A stretch of 64,000 bases of DNA from the NCBI GenBank assembly GCA_965112735.1, contig OZ218959.1:806001-870000 (forward strand), read 5' to 3'. A program made the position numbers and the translations under genes. Origin of the DNA: Phaeosaccion multiseriatum (taxonomy: Eukaryota > Protista > Ochrophyta, other classes). The notes beneath the pieces were generated by a model, which was not told where the DNA came from, searched no databases, and saw only the letters and a program-made list of their open reading frames with translations. Shown here piece by piece: positions 20,158-20,589 of the stretch; positions within the stretch are counted from its first letter, which is position 1; every line of letters starts with the position of its first letter.

Positions 20158-20431
20158 TGTTGCCCCTACAGCCTCATATTCATTGCCTTAGTACGTGTAA
20201 CTGTCACCATGCCCATATGACATCTTACGTGGCACAATGAGGTGGCACACAGCCCACCGGGAGTAGTAGTCTGTGGCGCTCCCTCACTCTTAGCTTATCC
20301 ACCCTAAAGCTAAAGGAGACTCGGTTCTTTACTAGAGCTGAGGCAAGGCCTCCAAACTTTACAACCTTGCACCCATCTCTTCAAATATTGGCTCACTTTC
20401 CGACTTGCTAGCGATAGCGGGATTGGCTACA
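20158..20431 (+). repeat. 5' LTR of element 5
   Basis: Direct repeat of 26889-27162. Confidence 0.95.
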
Positions 20432-20589
20432 ATAAAGCTTTATTTGAGAATTGCCAAAACTCAGGAAACTCTCAGCTCTCGGTCTCTGCATTCGGGAGAC
20501 CTCTCAGCCTCAGCATTTCTGATCTAGAGTCGAACAGCTCGACAGCCGGACCACCTCTGATCCTCAGCTTTGCGGAATTCAGCATCAGC

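Follow-up and report, generated by a model that had tools for sequence, protein, structure and literature searches.

In the textbook account, a host tRNA primes reverse transcription in LTR retroelements, and to our knowledge Tf1-type self-priming is the one established exception to this rule. The primer sites recorded in a survey of plant elements are of the tRNA, half-tRNA and self-priming types, with no palindromic type among them (PMC6317226). A palindrome at the primer-site position is known from one earlier report, on a fungal copia lineage, and was left without a mechanism. The elements concerned, GalEa (Ty1/copia of Pezizomycotina), have no tRNA site and carry a conserved sequence right after the 5′ LTR, which was named the Conserved Hairpin Site (Donnart et al. 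2017, PMC5445492). Together with the final A of the LTR, the sequence CHSeq1 forms a palindrome of 10 bp (A+CTGATCAGT or A+CTAATTAGT), and its variants keep the symmetry. A complementary box, CHSeq2, is located 12–41 bp downstream and forms the hairpin; none of the known priming models was found to fit by the authors (PMC5445492).

The window, i.e. the whole 64,000-nucleotide stretch of Phaeosaccion multiseriatum DNA that was analysed, contains three families of LTR retrotransposons between 10.8 and 27.2 kb, designated elements A, B and C, which were recognised by self-comparison (Table 1). LTR ends were set by LTR pairs, polypurine tracts, target-site duplications and branch points in the assembly graph. 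The characters expected of Ty3/gypsy elements (Metaviridae) were observed, namely LTRs bounded by TG...CA, a polypurine tract, a target-site duplication and the order RT–RNase H–integrase. The flanks of element B are compatible with a 4-bp duplication (GGAG), and the tract GAGGGGGAAG also precedes the 3′ LTRs of other copies of this element. Its 5′ LTR end was fixed independently by contigs from public runs, which branch exactly after position 20431. The bases following this position are ATAAAGCTTTATT, without a TGG. No RNA run was among the public runs carrying element B, and the four that were compared yielded DNA-like contigs.

Table 1 Positions of LTR retrotransposon features (window coordinates unless a locus name is given)
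Feature	Position	Strand	Remarks
G3 element	1–10613; ORF 4341–10613		DEDDy 3′–5′ exonuclease (PF01612) between RNase H and integrase; 5′ LTR at L059:2898–3093
Palindrome AATAATCGATTATT, second element C copy	11590–11603	-	LTR 11603–11778, minus strand
Element C 5′ LTR, plus-strand copy	14222–14397	+	TGTGGAG...CGCTACA
Palindrome AATAATCGATTATT, 14 bp	14397–14410	+	On terminal A of element C LTR
Palindrome AGAACTAGTTCT	15802–15813	+	Behind an older LTR (fourth family, G8 type, as in L049)
Element A 5′ LTR	15868–16149	+	100% identity to 3′ LTR 19681–19962
Palindrome AGAACTAGTTCT, 12 bp	16149–16160	+	On terminal A of element A LTR
Element B 5′ LTR	20158–20431	+	TGTTGCC...GGCTACA, 274 bp; 99.3% identity to 26889–27162
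Palindrome AATAAAGCTTTATT, perfect, 14 bp; candidate primer-binding site	20431–20444	+	First base is the last A of the element B LTR
Element B gag-pol ORF	20590–26760	+	2056 aa; RT, RNase H, integrase (Ty3/gypsy order)
Element B polypurine tract GAGGGGGAAG	26879–26888	+	Directly before 3′ LTR
Element B 3′ LTR	26889–27162	+	274 bp; followed by GGA microsatellite (target)

Element A is an internally deleted copy of 4.1 kb (15868–19962); a full-length relative of 5.6 kb with a 1727-aa ORF and an identical junction was found on L058, a contig from a public run assembly. Element C is present as two truncated copies in head-to-head orientation (10848–11778 and 14222–15151), which are 89.5% identical. 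Two direct repeats of 163 bp (13865–14221, 100% identical) abut the start of its LTR on the upstream side. The pol region of element B features an 810-bp in-frame tandem duplication (23548–25171), by which the RNase H region is doubled while the ORF stays open. Judged by LTR identities of 99–100% and by the many identical copies, several of the elements were recently active. The target of element B is a GGA/GAGGAG microsatellite of approximately 13 kb (27163 to about 40000, and 19963–20157). Further along the window, a gap of 100 N is located at about position 39643, the composition at 40–44 kb is extreme, and a tandem array with a period of 175 bp and 91–95% identity between units occupies positions 44773–46857.

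Each of the five 5′ LTR junctions in the window carries a perfect palindrome of 12–14 bp that starts on the terminal A of the LTR, with three sequences among the five, which confirms the central observation of the preliminary description of this locus. Perfect palindromes of at least 12 bp are not enriched in the window as such (18 compared to approximately 15.6 expected); five of these 18 sit exactly on the five LTR/internal junctions. The probability of such a placement by chance was calculated to be approximately 3 × 10⁻⁴ per junction and approximately 1 × 10⁻¹¹ jointly, counting three independent families. In the genome (67 Mb, 22 contigs), the 14-mer AATAAAGCTTTATT has eight sites, all of them family-B LTR junctions, and AATAATCGATTATT has five, at LTR junctions only; neither was found in the reversed control. 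A 20-mer composed of the LTR end, the 12-bp palindrome and CGC has 29 exact occurrences in the genome.

About 90 gypsy RNase H matches, falling into approximately nine score groups, were obtained from the genome, and one copy from each of six further groups was compared. LTR pairs and the same junction geometry were found in four of the six. A 4-bp target duplication was observed in three of these four (L048, L049 and L050), and the duplications in the sister families read GTCC, CCAC and GGGA. The junction palindromes are AGAAAAGCTTTTCT in L048 and AATAACTAGTTATT in L047, and AGAACTAGTTCT stands behind two further, differing LTRs in L049 and L050. Families B, C and G4 have the arms AATAA/TTATT in common around the centres AGCT, TCGA and CTAG, so that the centres have changed on both sides and the symmetry has been kept. 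Where families have both the LTR end and the palindrome in common, their homology stops exactly at the 3′ edge of the palindrome.

Two Ty1/copia families of the same genome (L147:774–975; L148, minus strand), both with clean 5-bp target duplications, carry 12-bp palindromes (CGACAGCTGTCG and CGACAATTGTCG) that abut the LTR and do not include its last A. In the family with CGACAATTGTCG, a further palindrome of 14 bp (CTAATGCGCATTAG) is located 10 nt downstream. A tRNA-type site was found in none of the LTR families examined in this genome.

Perfect hairpin mini-elements with TG...CA termini were observed at L059:2288–2897 and L047:2187–2276. They terminate in the same sequences as the LTRs of autonomous families (TGTTAGAAGT... 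and TGTTGCC...GGCTACA), and they are probably non-autonomous elements using the integrases of these families. One of them adjoins a motif resembling a tRNA T-arm (GGGTTCGATTC). At C14:2693068, a 3′ LTR has precisely the 13 post-LTR bases behind it and was first read as an LTR with primer-copy read-through; its structure is tandem or chimeric, and it continues into a fragment of a hairpin mini-element and a degenerate gag-like region. For families B and A, the genome yielded no inverted LTR dimers with the palindrome at their centre, which might have arisen as a by-product.

The nearest protein relatives of the element B RT–RNase H region show 33–41% identity and originate from metagenomes, sequencing-run assemblies and the oomycetes Aphanomyces and Phytophthora. 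The contigs of the two oomycete genera yielded no 5′ junction that could be used. On the contigs of the relatives, the same geometry was observed wherever the LTR end could be fixed, with the palindromes AGTTGTCGACAACT, AGTATCGATACT, AATTCGAATT, AGTAATTACT, AGATATATCT and AAAGATATCTTT. A metagenome scan added AAAGAATTCTTT, AATAACGTTATT (in two loci) and ATATTAATAT, the position of which is known to within one base. Palindromes in some families span ACA...TGT and reach up to 20 bp. A crude test on 59 metagenomic loci, covering the regions that precede the RT-homology match, yielded weak palindrome enrichment (p = 0.014). Palindromes of at least 10 bp occur about once per kb, unrelated contigs included, which makes crude enrichment weak; only junction-anchored metagenomic cases were counted. 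On this basis, at least 10 related elements from other samples share the geometry, and at least 16 different palindromes were found in total.

In a maximum-likelihood tree of RT–RNase H, which took in the eleven palindrome elements available at that stage, all of them (11/11) cluster in one clade with a support of 100/99, together with oomycete and chromodomain-bearing matches. In the other clade, the Tf1-type families are joined by an element that bears env and has a TGG site. Some palindrome-bearing metagenomic loci are nearer to this second clade, among them those with the junction palindromes ATTGATCAAT, AGTGATCACT and AGTAATATTACT, indicating either an old trait or more than one origin. 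In the clade holding element B, all 17 junctions with determinable LTR ends (17/17) feature a perfect palindrome of at least 10 bp at the last LTR base; one of the 17 was placed to within one base, and four ends were set by polypurine tract and terminal inverted repeats or by flanks ambiguous by 2 nt. The view of the preliminary description that symmetry rather than sequence is conserved holds for the at least 16 palindromes, the centres of which differ (AGCT, TCGA, CTAG and others) and stay self-complementary. Copia and a few metagenomic families deviate from this geometry by one base.

The end of an integrated LTR is set by the position of the minus-strand primer, and the primer site must therefore lie within a few bases of the LTR end. 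The palindrome is the only feature found there, immediately after U5. No palindrome begins with TGG; the first base is A in all of them, and the second is A, G or T. A tRNA 3′ end is thus excluded as primer partner, in agreement with the preliminary description, and complementarity to a tRNA 3′ end as in tRNA-primed elements was not seen at these sites. No tRNA genes were found in the window. A tRNA search of the genome gave matches on the small, tRNA-rich contigs C17–C22, which look organellar, and the individual loci examined contained one nuclear tRNA.

We propose that the palindrome is the minus-strand primer-binding site and that its partner is another copy of the same sequence instead of a tRNA, a reading to which we give an even chance of being correct. 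Symmetry uniquely provides pairing between two identical molecules. Predicted energies are −8 to −21 kcal/mol for the self-duplexes, resembling those of the 9-bp Tf1-type duplexes of this genome, and approximately 0 kcal/mol for the hairpins; in these predictions, self-complementarity fits a two-strand duplex and not a fold-back. Two points against pairing of two element RNAs are the weak self-duplexes of several families (−8 to −10 kcal/mol) and the one-base shift of the geometry in copia and a few metagenomic families.

According to a different reading, the palindrome would serve as a signal for dimerisation, packaging or the binding of Gag, or as the site of a dimeric protein, and priming would depend on another agent, for example a novel small RNA or a start that requires a protein or a nick. 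Retroviral dimer initiation sites are indeed palindromes, and the MMTV PBS, which binds Gag, contains palindromes (PMC8096270). These are dispensable for dimerisation (PMC8096270), which counts against the pairing of two element RNAs proposed here. Perfect Watson–Crick symmetry at the DNA level suits a DNA site bound by a dimeric protein as well as it suits RNA pairing, and this also speaks against our proposal. However, a minus-strand primer must abut U5, and nothing else is present there: neither TGG nor a complement in the LTR was seen, and a search for ribozymes and other Rfam families over positions 10500–27300 yielded none at a permissive threshold. A packaging signal does not need the last-LTR-base precision that is found in every family, and the at least 16 different sequences make one protein site unlikely. 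Overall, we consider a signal or protein site with a separate primer unlikely, although it deserves to be kept in mind.

An intramolecular hairpin could either be a fold-back that is cut to prime itself or involve a downstream partner, as in the case of GalEa, in which CHSeq1 pairs with the downstream CHSeq2 (PMC5445492). The preliminary description had offered pairing of two RNAs and fold-back as options. The first fits better than any alternative, whereas the second is disfavoured by the self-complementary centre and by hairpin energies close to zero. The central four bases are self-complementary in every family, with each central pair being Watson–Crick, although a loop need not be. Not a single G–T position occurs in the approximately 100 pairs formed by the palindrome halves. 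In predicted folds of the monomeric RNA, the palindrome is mostly unpaired and not placed in a loop. A downstream partner comparable to CHSeq2 never exceeded 4–6 nt in any family. A hairpin of either kind therefore appears very improbable.

It could also be assumed that the partner of the site is an internal piece of a host tRNA, corresponding to the half-tRNA type of copia/Ty5, or another host RNA, and that the symmetry of the site is incidental. Half-tRNA priming is known in Ty1/copia lineages (PMC6317226). Pairing with a host RNA, however, gives no reason for perfect symmetry, and each of the at least 16 sequences would need a partner of its own. The exact 14-mers exist at LTR junctions and nowhere else in the 67-Mb genome, so that no separate primer gene carries them; none starts with TGG, and the A/T-rich 14-mers are unlike tRNA stems. 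We regard a host RNA partner as highly improbable.

In Tf1-type self-priming in cis, the 5′ end of the transcript would fold back on the site, and such arrangements are present in the same genome in G1 and G3, two large gypsy families with a DEDDy exonuclease. The G3 element at the start of the window has many near-identical copies in the genome. Its LTR is followed by ACCCGGAAG, the exact complement of which, CTTCCGGGT, is found inside the LTR. In G1, ACCCCAAAG follows the LTR and its exact complement inside the LTR is, read by eye, CTTTGGGGT. The LTR complement is located approximately 30 nt past a TATA-like box in both families, and 9 nt after the LTR are involved (L059:3020–3102, L045:620–720). 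Comparison of the two families reveals compensatory changes (CTTCCGGGT/ACCCGGAAG versus CTTTGGGGT/ACCCCAAAG). Going by the sequence, this arrangement is the layout of Tf1-type self-priming. When used as positive control in the LTR-complement test, G3 gave a 9-nt complement abutting the LTR, which was reached in 19 of 2000 shuffles. In the palindrome families, by contrast, no stretch inside the LTR is complementary to the site in this way, and the best complement in the own LTR was no better than in shuffles for all 10 families tested. The LTRs themselves do not contain the palindrome: those of family B are present in at least 19 copies in the genome, whereas the palindrome occurs at eight LTR/internal junctions only. 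Fold-back of the transcript 5′ end in cis thus has very little probability for the palindrome families.

A structure at L146:12–3801 (C10:1920311–1924100) consists of a 1735-bp inverted repeat with 100% identity around a Tf1-type LTR and primer site, and internal sequence from past the primer site recurs in inverted form upstream of the LTR. Aberrant reverse transcription may have left this structure as a fossil. As a giant palindrome at LTR and primer-binding site, it was considered as a case of the palindrome families and rejected, since its family is Tf1-type.

Palindromes of at least 10 bp are found everywhere about once per kb, but chance as the reason for their place next to LTRs is next to impossible and is refuted by the statistics of the junctions: in 17 of the 17 determinable junctions of one clade, including all five of the window, the palindrome sits on precisely the final base of the LTR.

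Returning to the pairing of two element RNAs, the steps of cleavage and priming, which we purely infer, would begin in the particle, where two RNAs would pair through the palindrome of 10–14 nt. The RT/RNase H of the element would then cut one strand at the 3′ edge of the duplex, by analogy with Tf1, whose RNase H cuts where the 11-bp RNA duplex ends. The new 3′-OH, paired with the terminal A of U5, would be extended over the U5–R region of the partner RNA. The cut is assumed to be asymmetric, because cutting both RNAs of the dimer would cost the template its primer site. The 5′ tail of the primer RNA (R–U5) would be complementary to the new strong-stop DNA, so that RNase H would degrade this tail and leave the palindrome alone as primer.

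Plus-strand strong-stop DNA would accordingly copy only the palindrome. With the palindrome alone as primer, the plus-strand copy, and hence the conserved block, is expected to end exactly at the palindrome, and families with a common LTR end and palindrome are expected to diverge exactly at its 3′ edge. One half would be re-templated from the other in each cycle, and the symmetry would stay perfect; this proposed re-copying would account for the perfect Watson–Crick halves free of G–T. The one-base overlap with the LTR in gypsy elements, which is absent in copia, would reflect the point at which the primer is removed by RNase H. In HIV-1, a single ribonucleotide is similarly left behind.

Taken together, we tentatively suggest, with somewhat less than even confidence, that homodimer or 'trans' self-priming is a third general way of priming in LTR retroelements. 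Several Ty3/gypsy lineages and Ty1/copia elements of stramenopile algae would use it, as would relatives of oomycete elements and elements of marine and freshwater eukaryotes. Such priming would couple genome dimerisation to the start of reverse transcription and free the element from host tRNAs, and thereby from tRNA-fragment-based silencing. The feature is widespread, occurring in gypsy and copia elements of an alga and on numerous environmental contigs; its position is bound to the exact end of the LTR, it covaries such that the symmetry is kept, and a hairpin is disfavoured. What was an oddity thereby becomes the testable proposal that two genomic RNAs prime each other. Annotation tools for LTR elements that rely on primer-binding sites and seek tRNA matches will mis-score or discard such families. 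The avoidance of tRNA sites by all LTR families examined here also raises the question whether silencing by host tRNA fragments drives such escapes.

Compared to tRNA and half-tRNA primer sites, the palindromes are similar in position (0–2 nt after the LTR) and length range. The tRNA-dependent sites, however, start with TGG, the complement of CCA, or match an internal part of a tRNA, and are not symmetric. Retroviral dimer initiation sites (HIV-1 DIS; the palindromes of the MMTV PBS) are likewise self-complementary sequences of the 5′ leader that let two genomic RNAs pair. They are palindromes of 6 nt in hairpin loops and additional to the tRNA site, whereas the palindrome described here replaces the tRNA site and is not placed in a loop. 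Elements of the Tf1/sushi clade (Tf1, Tf2, Maggy, Skippy, Tcn1) are also independent of tRNA and use their own RNA as primer, in an RNA–RNA duplex of 9–11 bp next to U5. Their partner is the transcript 5′ end inside the LTR, acting in cis, and their site is not palindromic. In the palindrome families, no LTR partner is present and the site would pair with itself, in which case the partner must be a second molecule.

The closest precedent is CHSeq1 of GalEa, which is also the only true precedent found in a full-text literature search. Both systems have a palindrome that includes the final A of the LTR, variants that keep the symmetry, and no tRNA site. They differ in that a partner like CHSeq2 is absent here and in that the window elements are gypsy elements, outside the Ty1/copia clade of GalEa. 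The palindromes described here, which are 10–14 bp and up to 20 bp in length, occur mainly in Ty3/gypsy and additionally in copia elements, and their hosts are a stramenopile alga and environmental eukaryotes.
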